NCBI GenBank assembly: GCA_964304625.1
Contig: OZ199839.1
Coordinates: forward strand, 8,075,885 to 8,139,884
Direction: 5' to 3'
DNA length: 64,000 bases
Source of the DNA: Kudoa neothunni
Lineage: Eukaryota; Animalia; Cnidaria
Part shown: positions 1-58,259 of the stretch, one piece after another
How the letters are laid out: every line of letters begins with the position of its first letter
Numbering within the stretch: the first letter of the stretch is position 1
The notes under the pieces: generated by a model
What the model saw: only the letters and a program-made list of their open reading frames with translations
Told to the model about the DNA's origin: nothing
Databases searched by the model: none
Program-made: the position numbers and the translations under genes

Positions 1-774
1 TTTATTATTGTTTTCATATGACACAGGAAATTTTTTAATATTCTTAAAACAACGAGGGTTTTTATGTTTTTAGTGGTTCGAGCTTTTCACCATTCATTGA
101 GGCACCTAACAAAATAGTTACTCGCTTCATAGATTGTTCGGTCCCTTTAAACTCCTCTTTGATGAAACTACAAAACCTTTACCTACAAAATAAATCAAAA
201 CGTTAAAAAAACTACATATACCTCTCTGTTGCTGGTAGAATAATTGCAGATTCGTCGATATTATATGTACAATCTGAATTATAATTTTCACATGTCTTTA
301 AGTTGTGGAATCCACTCTTCAACGACTGCAGAATCCACATCTGCGGCTTCGCCATGGAAATTAATTGTTCTTAGGTTTAAATCGCTTTTTAAAACCCTTA
401 AACCACCCAATTGTCCACACTTCTGGCTTCTTATTTTCAACATAAAGCTCAATTCTTTTGTTGATGATATCAGAGGGGGTGATTTCGATTTTTTTATCCC
501 TCATCAAACAGATCAAATCACAAATACCTTGATCATAATTAATGCTTGATACGTTATGAATGTTCTTTCTTTAATTTTATGCTAATCCTCCTTCAATAAT
601 AGAAATCATTTTCTCCTTCTTACGAAGAATCCCATTTAGGGTGGCAATATTCGTAATTTGGAAATGTTTTACTGTTGCTATTTGAGAATGTTTAAAGGGT
701 AAACTTTCGAAATACTTTATTATTTTGAATTTCTCTTCCAAAGTTCTAACAACTTTAGCATTAGTTCTTGCCAT
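1..774 (-). pseudogene. pogo/Tigger-like (CENP-B HTH + DDE_1) transposase, 5' part, frameshifted; runs off window start
   Basis: ORF 577-774 MARTNAKVVRTLEEKFKIIKYFE is a close copy of the + strand transposase starting at 42329. A matching TIR (AATCGGTTACCTACTG followed by TA) lies at 2021-2036. Confidence 0.85.
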
Positions 775-817
775 CTGTATTATTTAATTGATATCAAACA
801 AAAATTTAATCAACGAT

Positions 818-1290
818 TTTTTTTGTTTACAAGGTAAAACCCTTGACGCAACTTGTTAGGTTGAGGAATTCTGGTTGATCAGACCTCTTCCATTAACGCT
901 TTAGGCACCGCAGGACGTAACATGAAACCCCGTCGCTTATCTTTATGCGGTAGTGTGGGACTTTAACCCACAAAACATCCTCGTCTCAGGGCGACCACCA
1001 CCCCAAACCCTATCCCTTTAAGGACGTTGGCTCTGCGGGAACTGCAAATCATTTTGCCTTTCGATGGGTTCCGGAGATTTAAACTCCTATTCACGCTCAC
1101 CCCCACTTCACGCAAATCTGGCTGCCAGTGCATCCCACCCCACAGCGAGCGTACACGTTAATCACAGCTCCCAAATATGGGATAGAGACCCACCGACACG
1201 GAAGCAGTAGTCTGACCACCGGCGGATTCGAATGCATTACCTCAAGGTTCTGAGTCCGAGTGTCACACCAATGTGCTATCTGTCCACGGG
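818..1290 (-). mobile_element. tRNA-derived SINE-like insertion
   Basis: GC-rich island interrupting the Tigger 5' region. The minus-strand head has an A-box-like TAGCACATTGG and a B-box-like ATTCGAATCC (about 1215-1285). It ends in GGGTTTTACCTTG followed by an A-rich tail. Confidence 0.6.
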
Positions 1291-1329
1291 CTCTTCTCCT
1301 TTCTTATATTGGATGAAGACTGCACCAAT

Positions 1330-1837
1330 GTGGATATTAAAATAGAGACAATTAACTCTCGAAAACTCAAATCTTTTTTCCATAAATGATCCCGACAAAT
1401 TTTGATTCGATGTATCAGAAAAAGAATTGGCGATGTTCCTAAATATCCATTAATTTCAAAATTAATGATGAGCTTGCTCTCATTACCTTTCTTCTTCTGC
1501 TTGTTCCGAAAGAATAGTTTTCCAATTGAACATAATCAAAACGAAAAATAGATCATTATTGAAGATCGAAACATTAAACAGCTTGATTTATTCTAAAAGT
1601 TTATTTTATAATAAACTTTGTACAAAATGGAATCTGCCTGAAAATTTAGTAACATCGTTCATAGAGAGAAACCTTTACGACGATAATTGTAATTACACAA
1701 TTTCATTTTATATAAATTAAAAAACATTTTAAATAACTACATTTTTTTTACGTTTTAATCTCTTTTTTGCGGCGATTAACTGTTGATACATTTTACTTGA
1801 TTTCGGTACATTTTTCATAAATCTGCTGACAACCCTG
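1330..1837 (+). mobile_element. hAT transposon 3' remnant
   Basis: Frameshifted LP.SSACSER.FSQLNIIKTKNRS resembles the hAT C-terminal dimerisation motif. Ends in the hAT-like TIR GACAACCCTG. Confidence 0.65.
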
Positions 1838-2079
1838 GCTCGAGGGGACTCAACGGGTCGTGGGCACCTCGAACCCGATTCCTATTTTAGTGCTCACGGC
1901 CCGTCCGCCACTGTATTATTTAATGATATAATTTAAATAAAATGATTGTAGAATAATATCGTTGTATAAATTCGAAGGGACAAAATTTTTCCCTGCAGCG
2001 CTCGCGTGAAAAGTTCGAAAAATCGGTTACCTACTGTAGCACGCTCCCGAGGAAACCCGTAGTTTTCGTGCTAGTATTA

Positions 2080-2436
2080 CATAATTTAATAAAGTTATCA
2101 ATGTCAAAAGAATCACATATATTCTTTTCTTTTTGACTGTATATATGTGAATAGATATATATGGTGTGGAATAAATTTCAGGTCGATTTCCTTCTAATTA
2201 TAAAGAATGTGTCTAATTTCCGTGATATTCCTTTGAATTAATATTCAGGATAATAAAATTATTATCCTTCAAAATATTTGTTAAGATCAATTAATATTTC
2301 CGAAATATTTGTATTGATGTTTCATTGGGTTTAAAGCGAACATTAATTCTGTGTATATATGTATTAATTATAATCCGGTTAAAATTTTGATTTTTATATT
2401 GAACGAAAACTATCGTTATTTCTTTTGCAAAATATA
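2080..2436 (+). promoter_or_regulatory. conserved upstream/promoter region of family A genes
   Basis: About 350 nt of recognisable similarity precedes the ATG of all four A copies (e.g. GATGTTTCATTGGGTTTAA, AAATTTTGATTTTTATATTGAACGAAAACTATCGTT). No function is shown. Confidence 0.45.
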
Positions 2437-5293
2437 ATGAAAGACTCTGTTTACGTTTTAAGAATTTGTACTTATCTGACGTGTATATACACACAAACGG
2501 TCCTGGGAGGTGCTTCAAATCCAACTACTACTGAAACCCCTTTAATTTATAAACTTGTGGAAGAGAGCAATCAATTAAACGTTAATTTTATATTAAATGG
2601 AAATTATTATACTGGGGACAAGAAATGTCATATAAAAAAAGCTGATGATGATGGCACGAAACCTTGTTGAAATTGCTACATGCCCCGGTGATGCTTATAC
2701 AACAGATGGTGAAAAATGTGTTTGGACATGTTCAGGAAGTACCAATAAGCTAGCTTTTGACAAGTTCTCCCCAAAGACTAAATATATCGCTATCTTTAGC
2801 GATAATGACGCAGCGACCGCGGCTTCGAAAAATAATAATGGGATTGTATTTGGATTGGAATTTTGTAACTAAAGGATCTGTGTTCAGTAAATTTCCTTTA
2901 GCATTACTGGTGAATCCGCGAGTTTCAATAACAAGGGAGGGGAAAAAACTGAAATTGAGCACAAAAGCTTGTAACTCGGTGAAATGTCCCATATTTTACA
3001 AGGGCGTGATATATGATGAGGGAACAACTCAGAGAAGTGGCATTGCAAATATTGAAAGTGAAATGGAGTTTAATTTGATGATTCCACATTATGCAATGAA
3101 ATGCGATAATTATCCCAGTTTCTTTTACACCCTGCAAAATAAATACACTCTTTTTAACATAGATGTTTATCAACCACAATATTACGTGACCTCTAGTTCG
3201 AGTGCTCCAACGAAGTATATGCTAAAATTTACAAACAAATTTCCCTTCGAAACGTGTCTTTTCAGTATAAGAGAAGTGCCAACAGCAGGTAGTAACGGTG
3301 GATACACATCGAAATGTGGTTCAGCAGATAAATGTTATGCGCCATGTAATAATGTTGAACTTGAATTCACAGCATCCAAGTCTGTTGTTGAAATATCGAT
3401 TAAAACCAGACACGTACCACTGACCATCAATAACATCCCTTATATTGGGTATATTCAAAAAAAATATGGTAATCCAAAAACATTTTAACTATGATAATCT
3501 TCTTATAGTTGTCATCGAAACTACTGCTCCTACCTTATTGTCAGAGCATTCATCTACTGGTGTTAAGTTAAATGTTCCCTTGTTTCAATCACAAGCTGCT
3601 GTTAAATTTTCTGGATGTACTGTAACTTATTATGAAGCAGACAAACCAAAACCTGCTGACCTTGTTCCTGATGGGGCGAAATGTGGAACTGGTAAAACAG
3701 ACTGTGGCAACGAGTGCACGACTGCTCTAGAAATTACAGGATTGGATAGTGGAAAACCATATATTCTTGAAATTGCAGCTGGTAATAACGCTAGCCCTCT
3801 TCAAGATTTTAAAGAACGTGTATTCTTTCGAACAGGTACTATAATCGAAAAAAATATTCTTTTAAATAAATATATAGCAAAGAAATCTGATCCAACCTTT
3901 TCTGAAACAACTCCAACAGTAACGGATACAACCGCGTCTGTTAAAGCAATAGATGTAACTGGTACAATCACAAAAGACGACAAAACTTGTGCTTACTATA
4001 TAAGCCCTCATAGAAAAGATGTATATGTGTGTGCAATGTGCGAAGATAGTTATCCTTGCAGGGGTTTTTGCAAGGATTCTCAAAAAATTATTGGGTTAAT
4101 GCCTGGAACCGAATATGACCTAAAGGTAGTTGCACATGAGGATTATGGAGAAAAAGAACATAAAATCACAACGAGTATATAAATTGATGAATTCTAATTA
4201 TATAACTAATTATGTTTCAAGCTTTGTCAACGCTCACACTAAAATCGGAATTTATAGACAAAGGCTTTAAGGTGATAGGTGTACTTTCAACACCATATCC
4301 TACGGCTGTTTGTCACTATAAAGTAAACGTAAAAAAAGGGAGTGAATCCGAGTTGGTCTACCAATGCCCACCATTGGCTTCTACAGCAAACACTGGAGCA
4401 ACCTCTAAAGTATCCAAGACTACTAAAATAGCACTAGCTAGGACAACTAATGGACACCAACCACAGAACGTGCCGCCTCCAAATAAAAAACCAGAAATCA
4501 CTCCATGCACACAACCTCCATTGTGCACTGATATTATATTCAAAGAAGGATACGAAGCAGACAAGGAATATGTAGTTTTGGTTACTGCTGTCGGCAGATC
4601 TGCAGAAACTACCATCAAAATACCCATAAGTAATAAAAAATCTAATTCTAAATTCATATCGTTTATATTTTAATTACATTTTTAAAATTATATACATTAA
4701 TTTTTTATTATACTAAACTTTAATTTAGGCCCACAGTCCATCCCCACTAATATCCAATCAAATTAACTGTGGTGTTTACAAGAGAAGGCGAAAACCATAA
4801 AAGTTAAAAACTTCTCTTCCTACAGAGCGTTGATGAGCAGTCGTTATGCAAATGGGAATTGAAAAATTGGGATGATCCATCCAAACCAATCGTCCAAAAA
4901 TGCATGGCAACTGGTGAACAAGGTTGTTCAGCTTTTCCATCATGCAAGGAATTTTCAATTTCAAATGTGGATAACACCAACAATTATCGTTTGATGTTAT
5001 ATCATAGTACAGATAGCAACATCTCTGGTTTTGTCGAATCCAGAAAGGTACTTGAAAAAATGTTACTGGTCATTATTTCTGATAATTTGATTAGATGATG
5101 AATCAAACAAATCCATGTAACATCAAGTTGTTAAATTATAATTGATTTATTTTAGGTCAAAAAAATACAATGTACTTATTGATGGAGATATCTTGTTAAT
5201 CAATTATTTTAGAATTATTGCTGTAGTAGTTCCAGTGCTCATCATTGTTGTTGGTGTGGATTCTATTTCGGATACTGGAAAAATAAAAACTAG
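2437..5293 (+). pseudogene. A1: Cys-rich FN3-like multidomain type I membrane protein, frameshifted as given
   Basis: GT-AG introns at 2865-2901, 3469-3508, 3836-3877, 4175-4221, 4630-4728, 5048-5094, 5117-5155 and 5172-5212. Collinear with intact A3. Carries several 1-nt indels and lacks intron 1; some indels may be sequencing error. Confidence 0.8.
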
Positions 5294-6249
5294 ATTTTTA
5301 TTTATGAAGAATGCTTTCACAAGCTGACGTTCGATTTAGCGACCGTAATTAATATCATAGATATTAATTATCTATTGTATTTCTTCAGCTATAACTTTTA
5401 AAATCTGAATATGTATTTTCATGCATATTTATTATTTCGAAAATTGTTTCTGTCTTTATTCTATATCATTTATTATGGGACAACTAAATCCAATTTTTTC
5501 AATATTCGATTAATTATATTTAAATGTAATAATAAATCTTATTTGTTTAGGTTGTTTTATTTGACAAAAAGTTGAAAATCATTATACCAGTTAAAAGTAC
5601 CCATATTTAATCTTCAAAGTAATTTTTAGATATGTTAAAATATTTATCGTTTTTAAACTAGGCGATACGTTTACAAAGCTGTAATAATTGATGTTATGGA
5701 ACCAACAATTTATGGGCTAACATTAAATCTTTTTTATTGTCATTTAAAATTCAAGTGTTGTATCGAATATTATTTCATGTAGCACACGTGTGTCTTAAAA
5801 TGAGTAAATAGATAAATTTATCAATATGAGCACTCTCAATTGATTTTAAGTTTCTGGATAAATTATCTAGTCCAAGCATTTTTATATTTGGACAAAACTC
5901 TAAAACCTGATTAATAATTAATATTTTATTCATTCAAAATGAGGCTAAATAATTTTATCGCGTATTTTACACAACATGCATAAATCATTTAATACATTAT
6001 CAATATACATTATTAACTTACTTATCTCTTCAAAATTAATCCCATTTAATTTAGGCAGTGGCTATTACCACGCTAGCGTATAATCCCATGTCGAGGCTGT
6101 CAATTGCCACGAAAGCGAATTTCTCCTAATATTTTGATTTCTTAGACCTATAACTTTCATTACCACTTAAACATTTTTTATATTAAATTTTAAATTTTCG
6201 TGTTAAAATTTACCATCTAGATTTTACAATAAAGATCAATCTTTATGCT

Positions 6250-8480
6250 GGGTTTAACAAAAATCTGGGCTAAATTCCAGTCAGTGTCGCCAACCGTGTC
6301 CGATTTCGGACAAATTAGTCAAAATTGTCCAATTTTTTCCATGTCGTATTTTATCCGATTTTTAGTCTTGTTCTTCGAAAGTCTGAATAATCGCAAAACA
6401 AAGTTTCAAAGATTGGAGTTTTTGCAAATTCCCAAAAAATGGAATCTAATCGTTACTGATTTCATGACGAGAAATCTTCGAGTAGAAAATTTTATACTTG
6501 GAACAATGCTTTATTTCGAATTAAAATGCCTGCAATAGATGTTCACCAAACACAAGACACAGTTAAGAATTTTAATAAGTCTTAAAGCCCATGTAATACA
6601 AAATTGAGCTTAGAAAAACATGCCAAAAATTTATCAAAATGAACACATTTTTAAATTTTATGCTCCCGTTAAGACCAATATTTTGGATTTTTTACCATTA
6701 TCATTATTGACGGCAATACACCGTTTTATCATGACCATGAACCATTTTGGAATTATTACGAAGAGATTTTTGTGCTTGAATTTAAAAGACTCATGATGGT
6801 GATATCTAATTGTAAGTTATCATTACAAGTGTTTGTTATCAATTTTCAAAAAATTCCAATTTTAGGTATTACCTAAAAAAATGAAAATTTAACTAAATTT
6901 TAACTACTTGACTAATTTTTCTTAATTTTAATGAATGAATGGTCGCACATAAAAACGAAACCTCATCTGGGTATAGTTGTTACATGAAATTTAAAAGTTG
7001 GACGATAGACTGTAATAGAATTGTTTGAAATTAGAGGAATTTAATAGGTTAAAACAAGGTTTGTTAGACTAAATTATTAATAATCGCCTTTTTAGCCATT
7101 GTTTATCGGCAAATAAATTTTAATTCTATCGGAAAATACCACACATCTTTATTTCCCCATGCTCTGATCAACGCTTCTCCGGAAGCAGCACTTTCTCTTT
7201 TGGAATTATCGAACACATCAGAAGAAATAGAATGTTGTGCTCTACATTAGATAATCTTGTTCTAATGAGGAATTTTTTCAACACATTGACAAAATGATGC
7301 CATAAATTTGAGGTTTCTGAGTTAATTATAAATTAACGTAATATTTATACATATAATTAAATATTAGTTTCGTTTTTACAAAAAATCTGATTTGTCCGAT
7401 TTGCGTTGGCGGCACTGATTTCAGTGACTGCGACACGCTTCGGAGATATTAGTAACTGGTCGTTATATTTGTGGCGCGGCTAATCTTAACAAGAAAATAT
7501 ATACTTTCGTGAACAGTAACGATATCACTAATTTGGATTATGGTTATTTCCACGATGATTTAGATTATACAATAAAGACATTACAAAGTCTTGGATTGAT
7601 ACCAAGTTTTTCTAAATGTTTGTGTGGCGGTCAAAATTTTTTTGCTAAAAGAAAAGATACTGATGATTGATATCAGTATAAATACATTTTATGCAGAAAA
7701 AGATAGATTCAAAAGGGAACAATTTTTGAAATATCTAGACTTCTGTTGCGGAAGATCTTCATATTTATCGTTTCTATAATTCAGCACTCATCCATGACTT
7801 ATGAGGATATTCGAAAATATGTTAGAATATCATCAAATTCCACCATATGTGAATGGAAAAATGTAATATATGATTTTGTGACCTTTAAATTGGATGAGGA
7901 ATCTCCAAAAATTGGCGGACGGGGAGTTATCTTTCAAATTGATGAGACTGTCATATCTAAAAGAAAATACAACATGGAAAGGATTCTTCGTAATCAACAA
8001 TATTGGATGGTTGGTGGTATCGACGAGAATGGAAATTGTTTTTTACGCTTAACACAACCAAGAAATAAAGACATACCTGTAAGAATTATCCTTGACAACG
8101 TCGAAGAAGAGTCGATCATTTGGACGGACGGTTGGAAAGGATATAATAGCTTGACAATGTTGGGTTCTGTGCATGGGTAATTATTCACGGATGGAAGTTC
8201 GTTTCCTCCGAGGGAACACATTCTAATCCAATTAAACCTACTTGGGGAGCTTTTAAGCGTAAATATCGGAGCGCAACAAATAAAAACCCAGAGACTCTTC
8301 CTCACTATGTGGCCGACTTTAAGTATCGAAGAAAATATTCCGGCAAAGAATTATCATCATTATTTAAATATATAATGATTAACAATAATATATTTTAATT
8401 TTTACGATGTTTCTGAAGTTTGTCTATTTTACCCGAAACGAGCCACAGTCATTGTAATTTAGCCAAAATCTGTGACTTAA
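6250..8480 (+). mobile_element. Merlin (IS1595/ISXO2-like DDE) DNA transposon, decayed
   Basis: ORF 7746-8180 has KIGG.G..FQIDET..SKRKYN, WMVGGIDE and SIIWTDGWKGY. The right TIR at about 8432-8480 matches the left TIR (GGCTAAATTCCAGT|GACTGCGACACGCTTCGG) once the 6282-7417 insert is removed. Confidence 0.85.
6282..7417 (+). mobile_element. non-autonomous hAT element nested in the Merlin left TIR
   Basis: TIRs CAGTGTCGCCAAC / GTTGGCGGCACTG. 8-bp TSD ATTCCAGT/ATTTCAGT. Residual RRNRMLCSTLDNLVLMR near 7220. Confidence 0.8.
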
Positions 8481-9484
8481 AAATCTAAAATATCAGTTTA
8501 TTTATATAAAAAATATGGTCGTTTAAATAATTTTTGATTTTATTTTATCACAATTAAATATTTCTAGACTGTTTTGGGTCCTAATTCGATGATCTATCCT
8601 CAAATCGACTTAACTAAATCATATCTATTATAAGTACATAACCTGTATATGCATATATATACATTTTTTTGTTCATTAAAAGAAATCTAGTATCTAAATT
8701 TTTGGATTATGATATTTACCTGACTTTTTAGGGTACTTTAAAACGGATAACTCTAAAAAGGGTATTGGAGTGTTATGAAAATAAACTTACAAAACTTGTA
8801 ATACTTATAATTATGAATTATGTTTATATGTTATATTTAACATTAATGATTATAAATAATAAATAATTTTGCCGCACTTATGTGAATTTTTTTGATATTT
8901 ATAATATGCGAGAATAAGAAATAATATAAGGCAGTGCTGAGAATAATATCTTTTAAGTAGAAAGATTTATCTCGTTTCATCAACTAGAAGATTCTTTAAA
9001 GTCTTACGAAAAAAAATCACTATGTAACTTAATAGATAGAAATAAAAAAATTATTTATATCAAACGTTTTCTCTTCCAAAAAATTTAATGGGGAATTAAA
9101 ACACTGTTATATTTAATACATTTGTTATTTTGGCAACCATTATTGTAATAGAGCAAAGGGTGTAAGAGAGGCTAAAACATTGTGAGGCACCTGCCAGACT
9201 CATTTAGGTAGGAGTCAGTTCCGATGGAAAAAAACTTGAAGTAAAATTTTTACAACTAGCACATAACCACAGGAGAAATCGTGTTTTCTTCAAATGTGCC
9301 GCCACAACGCAAATTACACAGCAATAATAAATTAATATCAGAATTAATTTCTGTTTGCCAATGAAAGAATGCTGCCTGTCTAAAATACAAAAAGCAACGG
9401 GTGTAATAATTACTCTCAAGTCCATACATTACACGGAAAATATATTTTCATAACGTAATGGAATAAACTTTTTCTATAAGATTT

Positions 9485-11600
9485 TAACCCTCCTAAGTCA
9501 CATGAAAATTTATACCTTCCAAGTATAATTGGGGTCCAGAAGACCTCACATTTTTATTTGATAAAATAATAATATGTATTTTAGAAGTTTTTAAAATATT
9601 TGATAGATTATATCTTCGGTAATTTCATAAATGACATCATGTAAATTAACATGATGTAATATTGGTGTACGCATGTGGCAAATGATAAAGAAATATTTTA
9701 ACCACGGGCGTATGTATTACTTTCGAGATCGCATATGTTCTATAAACATAACTCAAAATTCAGCTCATGTAGTAAAATTAATTTTTTATATAATTTTCGC
9801 TTAAAGTGATCAAGAATATCATAATCCCGGCATAGACTATTGCATAAAACAGGTAAACGTAGAAACACAGGAAATTTTTCCTTAGGGCAGAAACGACGCT
9901 TAAAAAATCCACCTAAATATGCCATAGTTCAATCAACATGGAAACAATTACCGGACTGTTTTGTTATCTCAATATTTTCCATACCCAGGGGTCGGCAACC
10001 GATATGGCTGAAAGAGCCAATTATTGATGGTGCGAAAAATTTTTTTACTTCTGGAATCGCACATTCAGTTTAGGATCGAAAATAAAAATATTTAATTTTG
10101 AAATCAGGAATACATAACATTTCAGAAAAATATGGAGAAAAAATCCAATTAGTCAATTTACGCGTTTTTCGATAACTAATTAAACCTATTATTTTTATTA
10201 TTAGTATTTAAATGCAGGGAGAAATAATAAAAAACAAAAAAAGTATACACTTGAAATTTGTCTGATTATTTCAAATAATATTGTATTACGTTTTTGGAAA
10301 TTTCCCATTATGAAGAATTAGATATTTAACCATTGTCGTATATACAACAAATATACCATATAAAATTCACTTTCATGGATGTTATTGTCAAAAAAAAGAA
10401 ATTTCAACCATATAATTTAATCTTTTAAACTTGAAAGAGATACTTTTCTAGTGTATTTTCATGAATTTAGTTATTTTTACGACACGCTATATTGGGTTTT
10501 CTTCGCATTAAAACTAAAGAACGTTCATTATTACAAGAAAATTCTTTGTAATGGATAAAATTTAATGAAAACGTGTATAGCTACATTTTTATGTAAAAAA
10601 GTTGATTAAACAAAATTTTTAAATTGGAAAAACTATCCACACTTTTATGAGTCTAATTTAAAGATTTAAAAAAGTTGTGCATATAAACAAATAAGATTTA
10701 TTTGTATAATATTCGAAAATTTACTTTTAAATAGTTTCACTTTAATAATAACCTTTTTATTAGGGAAAAATGTTTATTAAGGACAAAATAATTTGTTGAT
10801 TTCAAATCATAGATAAAATTAAGAACATTTCGAGTTATTTTGTCTCGTTAATTATTGCATAAGCATAGGACGATGTTCTATGAGGAATTTAATGTTTATA
10901 TGTTATTTATTTTTGTTGAATCTTTCCTTTCTATATCTAACTTTTAAGTTGAAAATTAAGAGAATTAGTTCAAGTTGGTGAAACTGGAGTACCATACAAT
11001 CATTTCAATACTCATATTTTCATTAAAAATGATTTGTCTGATGAAAATTTAAAATTTGAACGCAATAATGAGTTCAACGACTAGGAATTACATAATACCT
11101 TCGCATTTTAACATTAGATATTGTAGTTTATATTATGTACGTAAGGTGGGGAGCCACAGGTTGCCAACCCCTGTTCCATACCATCAAAATGTGAAACTCT
11201 CGTTATATAGAGAAATTTATGTAGTGAGAATAAAGCACGATACATCTTTCCTTCTTCTAATCCAAATATCTCTTTAACCGATTCTCGATTATCCCTGTGA
11301 TATCCCATCAGAAATAAACATCTAATGAAACCCATCCAATTCGATGCATCTATCACCAAAATTTTTCCACCCATGTACTGGTATATTTTAACATAATGGC
11401 GTACATAACAGATCTAAATATTATTCGGAAAGTATAAATTGTATTTGTAATAAAAAAAACGGAAAGACACTAGGACGACTATTCATAATATTTGTAACAC
11501 TTGTTCTGGATGCCAACGACGGGTTCATCGACCATAACATTCAGTTCTTGTGTATTAGTGAGTTAAGTTGTATGTCTGTATCAATATCAAATTTTTCTAA
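9485..11600 (-). mobile_element. highly decayed piggyBac remnant
   Basis: TTAACCCT terminus at about 9484. Minus-strand fragments such as NVMVDE (about 11530) resemble piggyBac transposase. The other end was not found. Confidence 0.45.
9986..11173. mobile_element. non-autonomous hAT-like TIR element
   Basis: TIRs CAGGGGTCGGCAACC / GGTTGCCAACCCCTG, flanked by the direct repeat TTCCATACC. Confidence 0.85.
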
Positions 11601-11629: not shown

Positions 11630-12983
11630 AATTTTACTCTAAATACTCATCTCGTTTCGATGAAACACGTTATGGATGAACAAAATTTGCCCGAAAAACT
11701 AACTATAAAGATTTACTCTAATAAGGTAGTTAGTCATTTTTAATTATAATGAAGGACTAAAATTAAAAATCACATTAAACTTGATTTTTTAAAAATTTGC
11801 AACCCCATGATCCTTTGAAATCTTGGATCAATTTTAACAAATGAAAAAATATGGAATTTTGTAACCGAATATTTTAAACGAATCCAAATAATTCCATTTC
11901 ATTAAAAATTTCCGAAACTAATGAATATTTGTTTATTTACAAAATAAGAATGTGTACCTTCAACGGAAATTTTCTTTACATAAAACTTAAATTAGTTACA
12001 ATTAAATAAGAATAAAATGTTCCATATTTTCCATAGCAAATGTAGAAAACTTTGAGCTAAATTTTTTCAATGCCAATTTATTTGGAGAAACATAGATTAG
12101 GTGAGAAAAGTGTATTTTCATAATAAACTTTATTGATATTAAAGTAGGAAATATTTTATAAGATATTTTATCAGTTAAAATCATATTGTGGAGAAAGTCA
12201 CTCAAATCATTTTTTTTATATTTCGTTTGTATGCAAACTAGGAGATTAATTTTGAAGAGTAAAATAAGTTAATAATGTATATATGATAATGCGTTGAATG
12301 ATTCATGTAGGTTATATAAAGTATGTGATATAATTATTTAATTTCCTTTTGAATGAATAAACAAAATGTTAATTATTAATGAGGTTTTTAAAGTTATCCC
12401 CGAATCTAAAAATGTTTGGAACTAGGGAACTTATCTAGAAACTTAAAAATCAATTGAGAGTGTTCATATTGATAAATAACCTACTTAGTAATTGATGACA
12501 CACATGTACTGCATAAAATATATATTCGATACAATATTTGAATTTTCAATAGTAATAAAAAGATTTTATATCTGCTCATAAACTGTTGGTTCCATTGCAT
12601 CAATTATTGCGCCTTTGTAAACTTATTATCGTCTAATTTAAAAAAGATAAATATTTTGAAATTTCTAAAATTAATTTGGAGATTAAATATATATAATTTT
12701 AACTGGTATAATGATTTTCAACTTCTTGTCAAATAAAACAACCTAAACAAATAAGATTTATTATTAGATGTAAATATAATTATTCGAATATTGAAAAAAT
12801 AATATTAATTTTCTCACATAAAATAAAGAAATACAATTAAAAAAAATATGCGTGAAACTAAATAATTATGTTCCTAATAGTAATGAATGAAGAAATCTAA
12901 TAGATAGCTAAAATTTGTTATTTTATGAATACAATCACCAAATCGAACGGAAATTCGTGAGAGTATTCTTCTAAAATAAAAAT
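11630..12983. repeat. duplicated 3' flank of family A genes
   Basis: Directly similar to about 32750-34120. Its gene-proximal half is similar in inverted orientation to about 5294-6040. Confidence 0.85.
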
Positions 12984-15887
12984 CTAGTTTTTATTTTTCC
13001 AGTATCCGAAATAGAATCCAACGCCAACAACAATGATGAGCGCAGGAACTACTACAGCAATAATTCTAAAATAATTGATTAACAAAATATCTCCATTAAG
13101 AAGTACATTGTATTTTTCGACCTAAAATAAATTAATAAATAAGAATTCAAAATTTTTATTTTACATGGATTTATTTGATTCATCATCTAATCAAAAATGA
13201 GAAATAGCGACCAACAACATTTTTTTCAACTACCTTTCTGGATTTCGACAAAACCAGTGATATTGTTATCCGTACTATGATACAACATTTAAACGGTAAT
13301 TGTTGGTGTTATCCACATTTGAATTGTAAATTCCTTGCATGATGGAAAAACAGAGCAAACCTTGTTCACCAGTTGTCATGCATTCTTGGACGATTGGTTT
13401 GGATGGATCATCCCAATTTTTCAATTCCCATTTGCATAACGACTGTTCATCAACGCCTGTAGGAAGAGAAGTTTTAACTTTTATGTTTTCGCCTTCTCTT
13501 GCAAACACCACAGTTAATTTGATTGGATTATTAGTGGCGGTAGGTTGTGGATCTAAATTAAAATTTAGTATAATAAGAATTAATTTACATATTTTAATGA
13601 TTTAAAAATTTAATTAATTTAGAATTAGATTTTTTATTACTTATGGATATATTGATGGTAGTTTCTGCAGATCTGCCGACAGCAGTAACCAAAACTACAT
13701 ATTCCTTGTCTGCTTCGTATCCTTCTTTGAATATAATATCAGTGCACAATGGAGGTTGTGTGCATGGAGTTATTTCGGTTTTTTTATTTGAAGATGGCAG
13801 ACCTTGAGGTTGTTGTCTATTAGTTGATCTAGATAATCGCTATTTTAGAAGTTTTTGGTGCATTGGAGGATGGGCCAGTGTTAGTTGTTGATGACGGTGG
13901 TGGGCATTGATAGACCCAATTCGGATTCTTGTCCTTTCTTTACTTTTACTTTATATTGACAAACAGCTGTAGGATATGGTGTTGAAAGTACACCTGCCAC
14001 CTTGAGCCTTTTTCTATAAATTCTGATTGTAGTGTGAGCGTTGACAAAGCTTGAAACATAATTAGTTATATAATTCGAGATCAATTTATTTATATACTTG
14101 TTATAATTCGGTGTATCTTATCCCCATATTCCTCATGAGCAATTACCTTTAGGTCATATTCAGTTCTAGGCATTAACCCAATAATTTTTTGAGAATCCTT
14201 ACAAAAAACCCCTGCAAGGATAACTATCTTCGCATACGGCACACACATATACATCCTTTCCATGAGGGCTTATATAGTAAGCACAGGTCTTGTCTTGTGC
14301 GTTAAGTGGTCCAGTATCTGTTATTGCCTTAATTGATGCATTCGTATCCTTCACAATTGGTTTTGTTTCCGAAAAGGTAGAAGTGCCCTTTTTCTCTATT
14401 TATTCATCAAGAAATTTTTTTTCTATTGTGTTACCTGTACGAAAGAATATGTGTTCTTTAAAAACCTTGAAGAGGACTAGCGTCATTGTCTGCGGCAATT
14501 TCAAGAATATATGGTTTCCCATTATCAAGCCCTGTAATCTCCAGAGAAGCAGTACACACGTTGTCACAGTTTGTTTTACCAGTTCCACATTTGCCCTCCA
14601 GGAGTAGTAGATCTAGGTTTGTCTGCCTCAAAATAAGTTACAGTACAAGTAGAAAATTTAGGCTCATTTGTTGGTTGAAACAACTGAACATTTAATCTAA
14701 CACCAGTAGGTGAGTATGTTGACAATAATGGAGTGGCAATAGTTTCTGTGACAACTATGAGAAGGTTATATTTGAATAAATATCCATTAAATACCAAATT
14801 TTTTCTGAATATATCCTTCATACGTGTCTTCACTTTTGGCCAAAGATACATGTCTAGTTTGAATCAATACTTCAACAACGGACTTGGAATCGTCGAAAAT
14901 GAGCTCAACATTATTACAAGGTGCATGACATTTACTTGCTGAACCACACTTTGACTTGTATTCAACACTGTTATCGGCTGTTGACTTATCTCTTATACTG
15001 AAAAGACACATTTCGAAGGAAATTTGTTTGTAAACTTTAACATATACTTCGTTGTATCACTCGAAATAGAGGTCACGTAATATTGTGGTTGATAAATATC
15101 AATGTTTTAATAGAGTATATTTATTTTGCAGTTTGTAAAAGAAGCTAGGATAATTGTCGCATTTCATTTCATAGTGTGGAATCAATCAAATTAAAATCCA
15201 TTTCACTTACAATATTTTCTGTGCAAGCATTTTTAGCTTCTCCTTCCGCATATTTCACGCCCTTGTAAAATATGGGGCATTTCACCGGATTACATGTTTT
15301 TGTACTAAATTTCAGTTTTTTCACATTTTTCTCGATTGTAACCTGTGGGTTAAACCAATAATGCTAAATGAAATTTACTAAAAATATTCGATGCTTTAAT
15401 TACGCCATTCTAATCCAAACATCCAGCCCCCATCTTTATTTTTATTTGCAGCAGTCGCTGCTGAACTATCCGTAAAGACGGCAACATACTTTGTCCTCGG
15501 AGGAAACTTGTCAAAACCAAGATTATGTTCATTTCCTGAGCATGCCCAAACACATTTGCTATTATTTGCATCGTCAACGCGACCAGAGCAATCGTTAATT
15601 TCAACAAGATCCGTGTCTACATCATTAGATTTTTTGATGTGGCAACTTTTCTCCGTAGAATAGTCGCTCCCAGTTAAAATTAAACTTAACTTTAATTGAT
15701 TGCCCTCTTCCACAAGTTTGTAAATTAAAGGGGTTGCAGTAGAGACTGGGTTTGGAGCACCTCCTGGACAGTTTGCGTGTATATAAGTGAAAAGTAGGCT
15801 ATACGTTATTAGTAGCATTCTGTTGTAGTATGTGTATTTACGCAACAGAAAATTACAAATTCCTAAAAGGTAGATAAAGTCTTTCAT
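12984..15887 (-). pseudogene. A2: family A paralogue, frameshifted as given
   Basis: MKDFIYLLGICNFLL signal exon, same exon layout as A3, and TM exon ending GFYFGYWKNKN*. Multiple 1-nt indels split the ORFs. Confidence 0.8.
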
Positions 15888-16439
15888 TATATTTTGGAAA
15901 AGAAATAAACGATAGTTTTCGTTCAATATAAAAATCAAAAATTTGATAGATTATAATTAATATATATACACAGAATGAATGTCGCCTTAAAACCCAATGA
16001 AACATCGATATAAATATTCGGAAATATTAATCCATCTTAATAAATATTCTGAGGGATAGTAATTTATAACCCCTAAAATTAAATTAAAGAATACGATTAA
16101 AATTCGACACATTCTAACCAATATGAAGGAAGTTTAGACTAAATATTATTTCACATCGTAATGCTGATTTAAATATTTATAATAAAAAAGACAAGGGGAT
16201 ATAGGGCTTCCTTGACATTGATAATTTTATAAAATCTTGTGATATTAGGTAAGATTTTAAATATAATTAGATTGTTTTCGTATAAATAAAAATATTTGTT
16301 ATCATTTCTAGAATATAGATTCCATTAAATTATAGATTAACTCAAATGTTAAATGCAACGAAATTTATTTTCTCAAGCAAGAAATAATTTTACTTCTCTT
16401 CAAACGTTACTGATAAACCAATCAAAAACTATACATTAA

Positions 16440-27558: not shown

Positions 27559-27866
27559 TATTTGATTTCTTAATAGGTAAATAGAAAAGTAGCTGATCAT
27601 GAATTAGCAACAAATATCTTTTTTTATCTAAGTGAAGCATTTGTACTTTAATATGATTATTTTTTTGTGACATTATTAGTAAAGTAGAAAAGTTTGTAGT
27701 TTTCGTTTTAATGCTATTTATCGGCTCTCAATTGTATTGTTGAAATGTTATTCAGTCTTATAGTTCGTGCTTCAATTACACAGTTTCGTACCTATTGTCA
27801 TCTAGAGTTATTCATTTGTATAATTATTATTAAAATTAATAACGCCGTTATAATTAAGAACCAAAA

Positions 27867-30128
27867 ATGTTGGTCATTGCATTGTTAATCATTTCTCTCT
27901 GCTACAATGGTGAAATAAGCTGGAAGTGGGATTATCTATAATAGATATATTTAGCCCACTCACACAAATACTACGTCCAACGAGATCAAACCGAATTAGA
28001 GGATACAATCCATTTAAAACTTGAAGGAGTTTCTGGAAGTAAATGCAACGTTCAATTGTTGGAAAGAAACGAATTTTTCTATCACTATATTGGGAGTGAA
28101 TCTGAAGGAAAACAACTTAAGGATGTCTCTTGTGTCGGGAAATACACTATTCCAACTGGAGCTGCTTTTCCATTCTATTATGTACAGATAAGATCCGAAT
28201 ATGCAACTGAAACTCTTAAAATAATCCATAGTAATTCTATTTTTTGAATATTTTTTCCTAATTTTCTTATAGTCACTGACAGTATTCCTCAAACTCAATT
28301 TAAAGTAAATGAAACTTCAATCGAATTCACCACTAAAAATGTCTGCAGTCATCCTCAAACTTGTAAACTAACAAGTGGTGACAAGGTCCTGGATGAGTTT
28401 ACTCCAACCTCTGAAACCGAGTGCAACACTGAAACCAAGCTCACCGGGTTTTTTGATTCAGTCGGTGATTCAGTCGAACTCTCTTGTGGTGTCAATCAGC
28501 CAAAAATACACATGTATAGAAAAAATAACAAGGCTATGGAATTCAGTCCTTTGGACAAACTTCCCTATCACATTGTTAAAGGAGATGCGGATAATAAGAT
28601 AAAAATCGTTTTCGATGAAGATATGAGAGACGAAATATGCAAATTTGAAATAAAAAAAGATGATACTAGTGCTGCTTATACATCAAAGTGCTCGGTTACT
28701 GGAGATGACACCAATTGTTATCAACTTTGCACTGACGTTGAAATGGAGTTAACATTTGCTGGCACAGAAAAAGATTTTAAAGTTAAAGTATCGACTAGAA
28801 ATCATACAGGAGCAGAGAAAATTTTAAGAAGTAAAATCCTTGTTTAAATAATTTTATTTAAATGTCAATTAGTTGACAAAAGTAACCTAGAAGTTACTCC
28901 GAAAGAAACTAATGCAACTCTTTCTATCGCGGCCCTTAAAGATACAGATTTGACCTCTGCATCTTGTTCCATTGAGTTGAGAAAGCAGGGATTTCCTAAA
29001 TTCAACATTGGCGTGAAATGCAATGCCGATTCAACTACAGCATGTCCAACAAATTGTGATGATGCTACCATTCTTGGTCTAGAACCGAATACAAAATATA
29101 TCGTCAAAGTGACTTATACTGGCACTGGTGAAAGTTCAAAAACATATAATGCAGAAAAGTTATTTAAAACAGGTAATAAATAAAAATTAATTTATCTAAA
29201 ATTTAATTAAGCTGACTACAATATAACGCAATTGCCTGAGATTAAAGCATATTACGAGCACGTAAAAATGACTGTAGCACCGAACGTGGCTCTGTTTGAC
29301 AGAGTATACTGTAAAATTCAACAAAAAATGGTGGGCGAAACTGCTTTCAGCCCATCTGAATGCGAAGAATCGGTTGATTGTTCAGGTTTATGTGGACAAC
29401 CACTCACTATTAAAAACCTTTTTCACGATACTGAATACGAATTTAAATATTTATTTGGAAAGTACGTTAGTGACCTTGATAAAAACAAGGTGACAGTATC
29501 GACAAGTAATGTACAATATTAATCTCTCAATAACATTTATTAAGTTGCAACGCTTCAAAAAATCAATGTTACCCACACATGGAATAACACCGATTTGATA
29601 GTCACAACGACAATGGAGCAGATGGACCCAGACCAAATTTGTGATTTTACATTTGCCCAAATAGTAGATGGAGTTGTCAAATATACTTACGGATTATATG
29701 ATAAAACTACTGGATGGGAGGGGAAATGCAACCAAGAAATAACCTTTTACAACACTGCTTCCTACAGAAGGGGCTCAATGAAAGTACAGGCCAGATACGT
29801 TAGTGAGCCGATCGTTGTGAGCCTTTGGGCTGGAGGAAATGAGGATAATTTTGATCCAAACTTTCCAGAAACTGGTAAACAAGGTAAATAATATTATATA
29901 AACATTAATTATAATCCATTTTAGGCACTTCGAATAGGTAAGATAGTTTATGTTAGAGTATTTAATTAACTACTAACTTTAATTTAGCGCTAATGTTGGT
30001 GGAACCAAAATTCTGTAATATTATCTGTTCCTATACAATTCTAATGATGATTTAGGTTGATTGTTGGTGGCGTTTTAATAGCATTGATGGTTTTTGCTAT
30101 TGTTTTCTTGGTTTTGACAAAGAAATAA
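27867..30128 (+). CDS. B2: Cys-rich FN3-like six-module membrane-anchored protein, about 640 aa
   Basis: Eight GT-AG introns (27910-27954, 28231-28272, 28831-28872, 29173-29211, 29506-29544, 29884-29924, 29938-29987, 30015-30055) give an open 1923-nt CDS. Signal MLVIALLIISLCYNA and C-terminal LLIVGGVLIALMVFAIVFLVLTKK*. Confidence 0.9.
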
Positions 30129-31620: not shown

Positions 31621-34120
31621 ATTTTTTTGTTAATTATTACAGTATGAACTAAAAGGGTTTATTACAAAATATTATATATTTCTTTGAAATACCATGTCTG
31701 TCATACAGTCGAAATGTTCTGAATCAGAAGATTTATACAGTCACATTTCACAGAAGACAATAATTTAACCAATAAGTATCGTAAATGCTCTGCCGTAAAT
31801 TCAAAAATTGAGTTGATGCTTGAAAGGAGAATTTTATTTCTTTAGAATATTCGGATAAATGGTAACCACTCTTCTTTGGAATGACTAGATATTTAAAAAA
31901 TATAACCCTGACTTCAAGTTCATATAAATATCGATAGGGAGTGTGGATGAAAAACAGCAGTTTCCATAGATGCATCGTTAACTTAATATCATATATAAAA
32001 ATTATTACATTTATATATAATTCAGTTGGATATCAAATAATGAACTAGTTTAATTAATCGGTTGCGGCCTATTCACAAATTATGAAAAAAGTATAATAAA
32101 TAGTTCATTTCAGACATAGTTTAACCTGGAGATAACTCAATCAAATCATTTTGAAGTGTTGGGTTTACTAAGGTAAAATGAGCTATAATTATTAGTTTTT
32201 TAATTTAAAATTGTTTATTCAATGTTTTATTTCAGTTTTATACACCTAATTCTATGAGGATCATAAGTAACACCGAAAAGTTATAGATAACTCAATATCA
32301 TTTGATGGTGTATTAGATTAAAATGTGTTTTACGTGCGAAAAAATTCTAGACAATCTAAGAATTATTTAAAGTGATCTAATCCTAGTCCGATAAAGACCG
32401 TAAAACAAATACATTAAGTTATAATTATTAAACATAAATGTCACAATTTTAAAAAAGCTGAACGTTTTCCTTCATAAATTGTTAATCTTTGGGTAACTAT
32501 ATTGTTAGTCATGAAGTGTATCTTTTTGTGATTATATTTACAAGGTGTAGTTTAAAATAGCTTTTAATTTAAATAGAAATTGGTATGGAATAATGCCATT
32601 TTATTTTCATTAGATGAGCCAATAAAATATCCTATTAATTAAACTTGAATCCCTTTATGACTGTAACGGTTTATAAAAATGAAAGCAGAAATAATTTTTG
32701 GTTCATTTTAAATGAACAATAAATACCCTAAATAACGAAGAATATAAATTTTAATCTAAATACTCATTCTTGTTTTGATGAAACACGTTATGGATTCTCA
32801 AAATTTGCCGAAAAACGAACTATAAAGATTTACTTCAATAAGGTAGTTAATTCATTTTTAATTATAATGAAGGACTAAAATTAAAAATCCACATTAAACT
32901 TGATTTTTTTGAAATTTGCAACCCCATGATCTTTTGAAATCTTGGGTCAATTTTAACAAACGAAAAAATTTGAAATTTTGTAACTGAATATTTAAATGAA
33001 TTTAAATACTTCCATTTCACTGAAAGTTTCCGAAACTAATGAATATTTTGTTTACTTACAAAACAATGAATGCGTATCTTTAACGGAAGTTCTTTTTATA
33101 TAAAATTTAAAATAGTTATAATTAAATAAGAATACTAAAGTTCCCTATTTTCCATAGAAAATGTAGAAAACTTTGCGCTAATTTTTTTATTGCCAATTTA
33201 TTTTCTAGAGACACAGAATTATGTGAGAAAAACGAATTTTCGTAATAAATTTGTCAAATATTAAAATAAGAAATATTATACGCGATATTTTATCAGTTCA
33301 CACAATATTATGACGTCACTATTGAAATTTAATTTATTAAACTTTGTTTGTGTGCAACTAAGAGATTAGTTTTGGGGAGACAAATAAGTTAATAATGTAT
33401 GTTGATAATGCATTGAATGATTCATGTAGGTTATATAAAATATGTGATATAATTACTTAGTTTTCTTTTGAATGAATAAACAAAATATTAATTTTTAATT
33501 AGGTTTTAAAGTTATCCCCAAATCTAAAAATGTTTGGAACTAGAGAATTTATCCAGAAACCTAAAAATCAATTGAGAATGTTCCTATTGATAAATATACC
33601 TACTTACTTATTTGATGACACACGTGTACCACTTAAAAATATATATTTAATACAACATTTGAATTTTAAATAATAATAAAAAGATTTTATATTAGCCCAT
33701 AAACTGTTGGTTCCATTGTATCAATTATTACGACTTTGTAAACATATTATCGCCTAATTTAAAACATAAATATTTTGAAATTTCACAAAATTACTTTGAT
33801 GATTAAATATGGGTACTTTTAACTGGTATAATGATTTTCAACTTTTTTTCAAATAAAACAATCCATTCATAGAAAAAATTTATTATTACATTTAAACATA
33901 ATTATTCGAATATTGATAAAATAATATTAATTCTCCCATATAAAATAATATCAAATAAATAAAGAAATACATTTAAAAAAATATGCGTGAAACTAAATAA
34001 TTATGTTTTATAAAGTAAGTAATGAAGAAATCTGATAAATAACTAATGCGTATGATATAATATTAATACTATTGCTGAATCGAACATAAATTTGTGATAG
34101 TATTCTTCATAAATAAAAAT

Positions 34121-37029: not shown

Positions 37030-38070
37030 TATATTTTGCAAAAGATAAAAACGATAGTTGTCGTTCAATATAAAAATCAAAAATTTGATCGGATTATAAT
37101 TCATATATATATACACAAAATTAATGTTCGACTTAAACCCGATGAAACATCAATACAAACATTTCGGAAATATTATTTCATCTTAATCAATTATATTTTG
37201 ACAGATAGTAATCTACTGTCCTCAAAATTAATCTAAAGAAACATCATTAAAATTTGACACATTCTTAACAATTAGAAGGAAGTCCAGACTTAACATTATT
37301 TCACGTCGTAATACCGATTCAAATATCTACTAAAAAAGAGTGTATATGGTTCCTTTGACACCCATAATTACATAAAATTACAGCATATACATTAATACTT
37401 TTGATAACTTACAACAGATTTTGTATACATGAAACAAATTATTGTCCATTCTAAAGTATAGGATCCATTAGATTATAAAATAACTAAGATTTTAAATTCA
37501 ACAATATTTATTAGGGTTGCACCGATACCACATTTTTTAGAACGAGTACTCCAAATTTCAGTACTCGCCGATACCAGTACCGATTCCGATACCATGTTTT
37601 ACGCATGTCCACATTCTAAATTTCAATTATTTTAGACGTTTGTTGCATTCTAATGAGATTACGCCAAAATTTGTAATCAATAAAAAAAGTTTTATTTCTC
37701 TAAAATTTAATGATTTTGCTTAATAAGAGAACTTAACCGATTGTATTATGGGGCCGGTAAAATATTAATTTTCTCAAATAATGTTTTGATATCCACTACA
37801 TGGATAACTAGTTCATTTAGTAAGGCAAAGCAAATATTTAGTGCAAGATTGCTATTCTTTTTTCATGAACACATCAAATCATGAGTAATATATTTTATCA
37901 TATAATTAAATTGTTCGCTTGCCATATTTTGATAAGATACTAGCGTGAACTACCCAGCGTTGCATGGGGAAGATTTCGCATAGAGACGTTTCTTTAGAAC
38001 ATTAAAAAAAATATTATGTTTCAAATTGATTTACAGAAGCCGTCAAATTAAATTTTTTTTAAGCATCATA

Positions 38071-57953: not shown

Positions 57954-58259
57954 GGTTAACGGATATCAGGATTTGAAACTAATAGTGAGATAAAATAACA
58001 CATCCAAAATCGTTGATTATTACAATTAAAAAAAGTATTAATATAATGAAAAAATAATATTAATTTTCCTTATTAAAAAATATAGAATAAAGAGAGAAAT
58101 ACAATCTCCGAATAAATAAATTTGCAGGTAACTAAATAATTATACATCTAAAAGTAAGTAATGAAGAAATATGATTGATAACTAATACGTATGATATAAT
58201 ATTAATCCTGTCTCTAAATCGAACATCAATTTGTGAAAGAATTCTTCATAAATAAAAAT

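Follow-up and report, generated by a model that had tools for sequence, protein, structure and literature searches.

A segment of exon 6 measuring 202 nt or more has very probably been transferred from the lineage of gene copy A1 to its paralogue A3 by non-crossover interlocus (non-allelic) gene conversion in Kudoa neothunni, a myxozoan parasite of tuna with a published genome assembly (PMC12239612). A3 lies 30.5 kb from A1 in inverted orientation. The two belong to a family of 15 clustered copies spread over 210 kb, four of which (A1 to A4) are located in the window, i.e. the whole stretch of 64,000 nucleotides that we analyzed. The comparison of A1 and A3 is based on one assembly of one isolate.

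The identical tract in exon 6

Positions 4353-4554 of A1 (forward strand) match the reverse complement of positions 34850-35051 in A3, which is encoded on the minus strand, at 202 of 202 sites, exactly as originally predicted, and the first mismatches on either side are at 4352 and 4555. Outside the tract, A1 and A3 have 27 mismatches in the preceding 374 nt and five in the following 100 nt. The two copies had been described as otherwise strongly diverged, which is true of the N-terminal modules (2800-3984, 285 differences in 1200 positions) and of the 3' flank (5377-6100, 182 differences in 744 positions), but not of the near surroundings, since 3979-4654 without the tract is about 93% identical.

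Within exon 6, the four copies of the window change partners. All ten informative sites in 4242-4352 (4242, 4259, 4268, 4276, 4316, 4328, 4334, 4341, 4343, 4352) group A1 with A4 and A2 with A3, and all 16 sites in 4386-4493 (4386, 4411, 4418, 4422, 4433, 4434, 4437, 4466-4470, 4475, 4479, 4491, 4493) group A1 with A3 and A2 with A4, with no conflicting site among the four copies in either block. This switch, as well as the peptide motifs quoted for the exon, had been part of the original prediction and both are present. The pairing of A2 with A4 derives mostly from the sub-block 4466-4493; otherwise, A2 has a long branch in the tree of the tract. Alignment combined with recombination tests, as had been proposed, bears out the exchange: the run shared by A1 and A3 spans 49 consecutive polymorphic sites, a length reached in none of 20,000 site permutations (Sawyer-type test), and the PHI statistic for exon 6 alone (z = −11.5) was as low in none of 1000 permutations (p ≤ 0.001). 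For the region 2800-5600 the PHI statistic reached z = −59, and over the whole gene all six pairs among A1 to A4 were significant by site permutation.

Exon 6 of A1 (4222-4629, forward strand) is a phase 1-1 exon with splice sites taken from the sequence itself; it is preceded by intron 5 (4175-4221) and followed by a donor GT at 4630, and its frame is open. Its product is a single FN3-like domain, in which four cysteines are invariant and an insert takes up about 45 residues. The exons served as separate queries. A search of Pfam with exon 6 gave no family match, whereas exon 5 has FN3-like features, a score of 23.5 bits for fn3 (PF00041; gathering cut-off 25) and a further weak match to DSCAM-FN3. 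An AlphaFold model of exon 6 contains seven strands (residues 3-11, 14-22, 29-38, 41-47, 104-106, 115-123 and 127-132), with a pLDDT of 63-80 in the core, a mean of 58.8 overall and low values for residues 53-89. When this model was used as query against PDB, the best matches were all FN3 domains (Z-scores 8.2-9.4, about 85 aligned residues), and so were nearly all of the top 50 (Z-scores up to 9.4, rmsd 2.1-2.7 Å, 81-88 aligned residues); the predicted fold is a seven-strand β-sandwich superposable on solved FN3 domains. The FN3 domains of animal receptors resemble exon 6 in this predicted sandwich and in being encoded by a single phase 1-1 exon, but differ from it in that exon 6 lacks a Pfam match, has the four invariant cysteines and carries the insert between strands C' and E, a part modelled with low confidence.

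The tract covers residues 44-110 of exon 6, namely the last part of strand C', Cys48, the entire variable insert, Cys95, Cys101 and strand E, and its sharp 5' end falls inside the conserved motif ELVYQC. As the whole variable insert is contained in the tract, A3 would now display the loop of A1.

The reading frames of the copies differ. In A3, exon 6 (34775-35182, minus strand) is intact, and of the four copies in the window A3 alone is free of indels that break the frame; it has no private indels. Exon 6 is frameshifted in A2 (13641-14049, minus strand) and in A4 (58935-59343, minus strand), the latter owing to one inserted nucleotide behind A1 coordinate 4443. A1 itself is broken in exon 7 (4730-5047, forward strand), the next cysteine-bearing module, which is 90-99% alike across the cluster copies, by private 1-nt indels at 4751, 4795, 4806, 4826 and 5037. 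Further private 1-nt indels of A1 are located at 5159 and in a G-run near 5257. Frame-breaking indels are also found in the copy L008. The private 1-nt indels, which are biased towards insertions and occur in several copies, may be consensus errors.

Three other sources of the observed pattern were considered and rejected. Constraint is not the source of the identity, as no part of the exon varies more than the tract (9-19% difference in the other copies) and its synonymous sites are identical as well. GC-biased replacement is not apparent from the 14 weak-to-strong and 12 strong-to-weak changes. Diversifying selection on the exchanged segment is not indicated by the mean pairwise dN/dS, which is below 1 both in the insert (0.43) and across exon 6 (0.35), values that average over sites and leave room for a few selected ones.

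Lineage of the tract and of its flanks

Compared with copies beyond the window, A3 is a patchwork. In A1 coordinates, it follows L008 in 3985-4195, L012 in 4196-4357 and A1 in 4353-4554, and then continues into a 3' flank similar to L011 and L012. The L008 segment (A3 35209-35419, minus strand), which comprises the end of exon 5 and intron 5, has one difference in 212 positions and constitutes a further converted patch; its identical runs measure 166 and 96 nt and extend to A1 coordinate 4246. The L012 segment (A3 35047-35208, minus strand) is an identical run of 162 nt, and the corresponding run with L011 measures 140 nt. As the L012 segment overlaps the A1 tract by 5 nt, the 5' breakpoint lies within 4353-4357.

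Comparison by segment places the A1-type tract on a backbone of the L012 lineage. Between A3 and L012 there are no differences in the 157 positions of 4196-4352, 30 in the 202 positions of the tract (30 also for L011) and 26 in 731 positions of the 3' flank (3.6%; A3 about 33700-34300). The equivalent values between A3 and A1 are 15 in 157, none in 202, and 24% for the 3' flank. A1, in turn, is similar on both sides of the tract to its sister copy L002, located outside the window, with 12 differences in 1188 positions of the N-terminal modules and 29 in 729 positions of the flank. The N-terminal modules of A3 (about 35450-37150) are unique, being 22-25% different from every copy. The 3' boundary of the tract is fuzzy: in 4555-4654, A3 has the letter of A1 and not that of L012 at six sites, but departs from A1 at five, and from 4655 onwards it is of the L011/L012 type. 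The copied length is thus at least 202 nt, and up to about 300 nt (4353-4654) if these five differences are allowed. Segment trees mirror this change of affiliation, in that A3 is identical to L011 and L012 in 4222-4352, whereas A1, A3 and L002 form a clade in 4353-4554 (support 99/97). Tract, trees and unchanged flanks support the prediction that the inverted copies recently underwent segmental gene conversion.

The same comparisons point to a direction. L002 carries the tract type with two differences, at 4386 and 4422, and no further copy in the genome has it, the next-best match to exon 6 being 91% identical. Because the type is present in the sister of A1, parsimony makes A1 the likely donor and A3 the likely recipient. 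At the two differing sites, 4386G and 4422A are derived, common to A1 and A3 but not L002, and found in almost no other copy, which dates the conversion after the split of A1 and L002.

Ectopic gene conversion in clustered families is a textbook process. Here, a break in A3 was presumably repaired by homologous recombination with A1 as template, for which synthesis-dependent strand annealing and short-patch heteroduplex repair are candidate routes, and the event would have taken place in the germ line rather than somatically. The parental arrangement is kept, with A3 being of the L012 type and A1 of the L002 type on both sides.

The switch of partners had been taken for one reciprocal event, a reading that does not hold once all 15 copies are compared; it looked reciprocal because only four of them were in view. 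The 5' and 3' groupings have separate sources. The former combines an older two-type polymorphism at 4304-4352 with a short, probable patch of L004/A4 type in A1 (4227-4285, forward strand), where six sites differ from L002 and match L004 and A4; in the tree of 4222-4352, A1 accordingly joins L004 and A4 (support 85/94). The latter combines the A1-to-A3 tract with a separate block common to A2, A4 and L008. The apparent switch is therefore the sum of the A1-to-A3 event, at least two other patches, a shared block and an older polymorphism, the other patches being L008 into A3 and, probably, the L004/A4 type into A1. In addition, A1 and A2 share an identical tract of 119 nt (4500-4618, forward strand; about 13652-13770 in A2, minus strand), which overlaps the 3' end of the A1/A3 tract.

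Alternative explanations

Mis-assignment of paralogous reads during correction or consensus building could have produced the tract in A3 or A1 artificially. The assembly was built with hifiasm-meta from HiFi reads of a Thunnus albacares individual, roughly 27,000 of them from Kudoa, at a parasite k-mer coverage of only about 7x (PMC12239612), and the insertion-biased private indels could be errors of this kind. Nevertheless, we consider an artefact improbable. A1 and A3 are inverted and about 24% different in their flanks, so that long HiFi reads of the two loci would not be expected to overlap, and the text of the genome paper does not mention polishing (PMC12239612). In one sample, contigs from four short-read runs agree with A3 32000-37900 at ≥99%; these are short unitigs (Logan), which do not display linkage across the tract. 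They contain no alternative letters in 33000-36400, including exon 6 of A3, although such contigs drop rare variants. Moreover, A3 is free of private indels and is back in its own lineage within 200-300 nt on either side, which is unlike a mis-join, and similar patches occur in 22 of 105 cluster pairs.

Gene conversion could also be part of a dedicated diversification system similar to antigenic variation, in which the silent or broken copies A1, A2, A4 and L008 serve as an archive of donors from which the variable loop would be rewritten, repeatedly, in A3 and other expressed genes. This would fit the observation that what was moved corresponds exactly to the variable insert flanked by conserved cysteines, and that the recipient is the only intact copy in the window, its partners A1 and L008 being broken by indels. 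Myxozoans have been reported to show antigenic variation, the mechanism of which is not known (bioRxiv 10.64898/2026.02.11.705288). Such a system is quite improbable, however, as neither an expression site nor a boundary motif was found, the read contigs show no variant letters at A3 (with the above caveat on rare variants), and the mean dN/dS of 0.43 in the insert and 0.35 in the exon gives no signal of diversifying selection. Furthermore, introns and conserved 3' modules are homogenised as well, as in ordinary concerted evolution, and the frameshifts may be consensus errors.

It is very improbable that the tract is the remnant of a recent duplication of the whole A1 gene into A3, the rest of which was overwritten by later conversions. 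Overwriting does occur, given that at least three other copies are represented in the patchwork of A3, but its 3' flank is homologous to L011 and L012 and far from A1, its N-terminal modules are distant from every copy, and many more events would be needed than for one short conversion.

A single crossover between A1 and A3, the alternative allowed for in the original prediction, would agree with the inverted orientation and the sharp 5' change of partner, but it would swap the flanks and invert the intervening 30 kb, whereas the similarity to A1 stops within 202-302 nt and both copies keep their own lineage in both flanks, which leaves this explanation extremely improbable and, for a single crossover, in effect excluded.

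Exchange across the gene cluster

The preferred reading, a short non-crossover conversion, places the A1/A3 tract among many of its kind, and within the cluster it is unexceptional. In the variable part of the gene, identical tracts of at least 100 nt connect 22 of 105 cluster pairs and none of 105 pairs of a cluster and a dispersed copy. The longest measures 645 nt, and comparable tracts of 607, 334, 302, 256 and 245 nt were found between copies that are 80-90% alike. The pairs with long tracts are in direct as well as inverted orientation, at distances of 24-117 kb, and conversion homogenises introns and conserved 3' modules too.

The cluster encodes an undescribed family of FN3-like type I membrane proteins that is lineage-specific in K. 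neothunni. A search of 1.84 billion representative proteins gave five relatives, all weak or fragmentary, and an exact look-up of the 277-residue open frame of A3 in other assemblies had no match. The genome paper of the species mentions neither gene families, paralogues nor surface proteins, and identifies the fourth contig, by length, as the mitochondrion (PMC12239612). In the first 10 kb of this contig, a tRNA and Rfam search had no match. Nuclear-receptor zinc fingers are present in the genome, which points to an animal, and an 18S locus was found. Profiles for Wnt and innexin had no match, a negative that carries no information because their controls could not score either.

Mechanistically, exchange in the cluster does not differ from interlocus gene conversion in other clustered families, as detected by Sawyer/GENECONV-type tests and PHI. 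It shares with them short identical tracts in diverged paralogues, disagreement between tract and flank trees with unchanged flanks, and limitation to clustered copies in both orientations, and tract lengths of 100-650 nt fit. As far as our literature search shows, the process is new for this family and for a myxozoan. Parasite antigen families such as the trypanosome VSGs evolve by duplication, point mutation and gene conversion (PMC3472502), and the VSG families with their mosaic genes (PMC3472502, PMC3708902) resemble the cluster in being large, clustered and of surface type, with some broken frames and segmental mosaics. Yet the FN3-like fold is unrelated and dN/dS is below 1, and the Kudoa cluster gives no indication of mono-allelic expression, an expression site, somatic switching or immune exposure. 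The ves genes of Babesia bovis (PMC7485966) also combine short patches from several donors in one gene, as does A3, where 600 nt hold patches of L008, L012 and A1; in Babesia, however, the exchange proceeds somatically and rapidly and is targeted to an active locus, in contrast to a fixed germ-line state in one assembly.

For annotation and phylogeny, our results imply that single-gene trees of this family are meaningless and that comparisons of four copies mislead. There is a slim chance that the 15 copies form a working repertoire, in which short conversions move the cysteine-bounded insert from broken donors into a few intact, expressed genes. If so, segmental gene conversion would allow an animal, Kudoa, to vary a surface protein that faces the host, and the antigenic variation reported in myxozoans would have a molecular mechanism. 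The A1-to-A3 conversion indicates, with polarity, that in K. neothunni one paralogue can pass the variable loop of an FN3-like module to another in one piece, and the locus offers a place to ask whether this exchange is evolutionary only or somatic too.

The shared tract in exon 6 and the mosaic structure of A3

The FN3-like membrane-protein family to which A1 (forward strand) and A2, A3 and A4 (reverse strand) belong has at least 25 full-length copies of exon 6 in the genome, and 15 exon 6 copies lie at 7.96-8.17 Mb of contig C2, in both orientations; the window is C2 8075885-8139884. In an alignment of 23 copies that took in 1.5 kb of flank on either side of each, the nearest relative of A1 is not A3 but L002, a copy outside the window, 49.6 kb upstream of A1; the two differ at 12 of 1188 positions in the N-terminal modules and at 29 of 729 in the 3' flank. 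Within exon 6 (A1 4222-4629), all 202 nt of A1 4353-4554 match the reverse complement of A3 34850-35051, and mismatches at 4352 and 4555 bound the tract. The background identity of A1 and A3 beside the tract is about 93%, with 27 mismatches in 3979-4352 and 5 in 4555-4654 (ungapped register).

The original prediction held that the four window copies switch partners within this exon, and their informative sites do so exactly as claimed: all 10 sites between 4242 and 4352 group A1 with A4 against A2 with A3, all 16 between 4386 and 4493 group A1 with A3 against A2 with A4, and neither set contains a conflicting site. The peptide motifs that it quoted were likewise found in the copies. In a Sawyer-type test, which permutes the order of polymorphic sites, the A1-A3 run of 49 concordant sites was matched in 0 of 20,000 permutations, and over the whole gene six of six pairs of window copies were significant. 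Our own implementation of PHI gave z = −11.5 when restricted to exon 6 and z = −59 over 2800-5600 with the 15 cluster copies. Gene conversion between A1 and A3 is favoured, and the observation behind it is real and well supported.

The supposed reciprocity of the switch is not supported once all copies are aligned, the pattern being a composite of four components. The first, at 4304-4352, is an older two-type polymorphism, with one type in A1, A4 and the further family copies L002, L004-L006 and L008, and the other in A3, A2, L007, L009, L011 and L012. The second, at A1 4227-4285, is probably a short patch of L004/A4 type, where six sites depart from L002 and match L004 and A4. The third is the putative A1-to-A3 tract at 4353-4554, and the fourth a block common to A2, A4 and L008 at 4466-4493.

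A3 is a patchwork of several copies. In A1 coordinates, its closest copy is L008 over 3985-4195 (1/212 differences), L012 over 4196-4357 (0 differences, a 162-nt identical run), A1 over 4353-4554 (0/202, against 2/202 for L002 and 30/202 for L012) and L011/L012 from 4655 onward and in the 3' flank at 5377-6100 (26/731, against 182/744 for A1). The segment tree of 4222-4352 places A3 with L011 and L012, from which it does not differ there, and joins A1 to (L004, A4); in that of 4353-4554, A1, A3 and L002 form a clade with 99/97 support.

The gene, its product and its relatives

Exon 6 reads from the sequence as phase 1-1, and four cysteines of its product (C30, C48, C95 and C101) are invariant. 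Modelled by AlphaFold from 18 paralogue sequences, this product is a seven-strand sandwich in which residues 53-89 form a low-confidence insert; when the model was compared with solved structures, the 50 best matches were almost all FN3 domains (Z up to 9.4). Pfam gave no match in exon 6 and only a sub-threshold fn3 match in exon 5, whose language-model features point to FN3. Exon 6 is followed downstream by another conserved module with cysteines and by an exon for a transmembrane segment and a tail ending KNKN, from which the product, its exons being read separately, is predicted to be a type I membrane protein. A 17-nt intron deletion from 4655, common to A3, A2, L011 and L012, removes a stop, so that intron retention would be in frame in these copies. 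At A3 34362-35198 (reverse strand) the exon 6 frame runs on without a stop across intron 6 and into exon 7, over 279 codons.

Among 1.84 billion representative proteins exon 6 has five relatives only, weak or fragmentary, the best of which come from one metagenome assembly (ENA ERZ28624939). There, two short contigs (L033 and L034) contain relatives at 34% and 59% identity, the remaining public relatives being three weaker matches (P0003-P0005). Each contig has three or four ORFs in succession on the same strand; these are presumably exons of a homologous gene belonging to a related myxozoan. The genome paper mentions no gene families, paralogues or surface proteins (PMC12239612), and a literature search returned no paper on fibronectin or gene conversion in Kudoa or Myxozoa.

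The mean pairwise dN/dS, 0.43 in the insert and 0.35 for the whole exon, gives no indication of diversifying selection. A dedicated variation system behind the exchange is improbable.

Direction, boundaries and mechanism of the exchange

The tract type is carried by A1 and L002, which are sisters along the entire duplicated unit, and is lacking in L011 and L012, the sisters of A3. A single conversion from A1 to A3 would account for this distribution; the opposite direction would require at least two events. Inside the tract A1 and L002 differ at two sites, 4386 and 4422, and A3 has the A1 state, otherwise nearly unique in the family, at both, which would place the event after the A1/L002 split. 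The 0 differences between A1 and A3 in 202 nt, against 1-4% between A1 and L002, point to a recent event.

The 5' switch falls in the conserved motif ELVYQC, between 4353 and 4357, where the L012-identical and A1-identical runs overlap. The 3' boundary is less sharply defined: over 4555-4654 A3 shares the A1 state against L012 at six sites but departs from A1 at five (4555 and 4626, private to A3; 4573, of the common type; 4617 and 4620, of L013/L014 type), so that the A1-derived segment should span at least 202 and at most about 302 nt. The 17-nt deletion marks A3's return to its own lineage.

The genome of 40.26 Mb is made up of pieces of 17.15, 12.04 and 11.05 Mb and one of 18,219 bp; it has (TTTAGG)n at one chromosome end, and its nuclear-receptor zinc fingers identify it as that of an animal. 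The published assembly (40.2 Mb, N50 12.0 Mb, three chromosomes, telomere motif (TAAACC)n, the 18,219-bp contig being the mitochondrion) was built by hifiasm-meta out of HiFi reads of Thunnus albacares, with a k-mer coverage of about 7x (PMC12239612). The window's words occur in some runs labelled with a species of much larger genome and are missing from other runs of the same label, which fits a parasite sequenced together with its host. Positions 1-10000 of the 18,219-bp contig (C4; L026) have a GC content of 42-45% and, between 2 and 8 kb, a strong excess of A over T; ARAGORN (bacterial settings) detected no tRNA in them, and Rfam gave no match.

That the tract is an assembly artefact seems very unlikely. 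The low coverage speaks for it, as do the 6-12 private 1-nt indels in each of A1, A2, A4 and L008, possibly local consensus error; however, A3 is among the seven of 15 cluster copies with none, both sides of the patch revert to its own lineage, the genome paper names no polishing step (PMC12239612), and the A1 and A3 loci are inverted with flanks about 24% diverged, so that long reads from one should not be mistaken for those of the other. In four runs of one sample, probably the same fish as the assembly, Logan short-read contigs cover A3 32000-37900 at ≥99% with no alternative letters within 33000-36400; among the pieces listed, none bridges the tract. Linkage across the tract apart, A3 is supported at base level. 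The private indels are bimodally distributed, the other counts being 1 each in L005, L007 and L013, 2 in L002, 6 in A1 (4751-5260), 7 in L008, 9 in A4 (57900-61800) and 12 in A2 (12400-16100). With about 28 insertions against 6 deletions they are strongly insertion-biased, and they could be real pseudogene decay or consensus error of an assembly at this coverage.

A single crossover between the inverted A1 and A3, the alternative originally entertained, is excluded because both flanks of either partner keep their own lineage; the event is best read as a conversion without crossover or, in formal terms, a double exchange.

Exchange across the cluster

Within the variable region of the gene (2800-4700), identical tracts of at least 100 nt occur in 22 of the 105 cluster pairs and in 0 of 105 cluster-dispersed pairs, where the maximum is 68 nt. 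The longest over 2800-5600 (645, 607, 334, 302, 256 and 245 nt) join copies only 80-90% alike overall, direct and inverted, 24-117 kb apart. Homogenisation of the cluster copies is polar along the gene: the 3' part at 4740-5300 (membrane-proximal module, introns and transmembrane exon) is 90-99% alike in all 15 copies, and the N-terminal modules are 20-30% different. The likeness of the 3' part, introns included, is the outcome expected of concerted evolution by conversion.

The start of A1 exon 7 (4725-4850) is 96-97% identical to L012, L005 and L011, against 91% to its sister L002, with indels as its only differences from L012, and appears to be another converted patch. It holds four of A1's private 1-nt indels in about 75 nt, a cluster that could stem from mutagenic repair synthesis or consensus error. 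In a second gene family of the window, long stretches of 27612-29949 recur in inverted orientation in 46434-48773 (1185 nt at 92%, 642 nt at 98% and 341 nt at 90%), and their uneven identity suggests that they too have exchanged sequence in this way.

Mechanistically the case is one of ordinary non-allelic gene conversion within a clustered family, and its moderate interest stems from the gene family and the organism. A3 is the sole A copy in the window free of frame-breaking indels; the A1 frame is open through exon 6, and its private indels lie in exon 7 and the transmembrane exon. If these are real, a loop would have passed from a broken copy to an intact gene.
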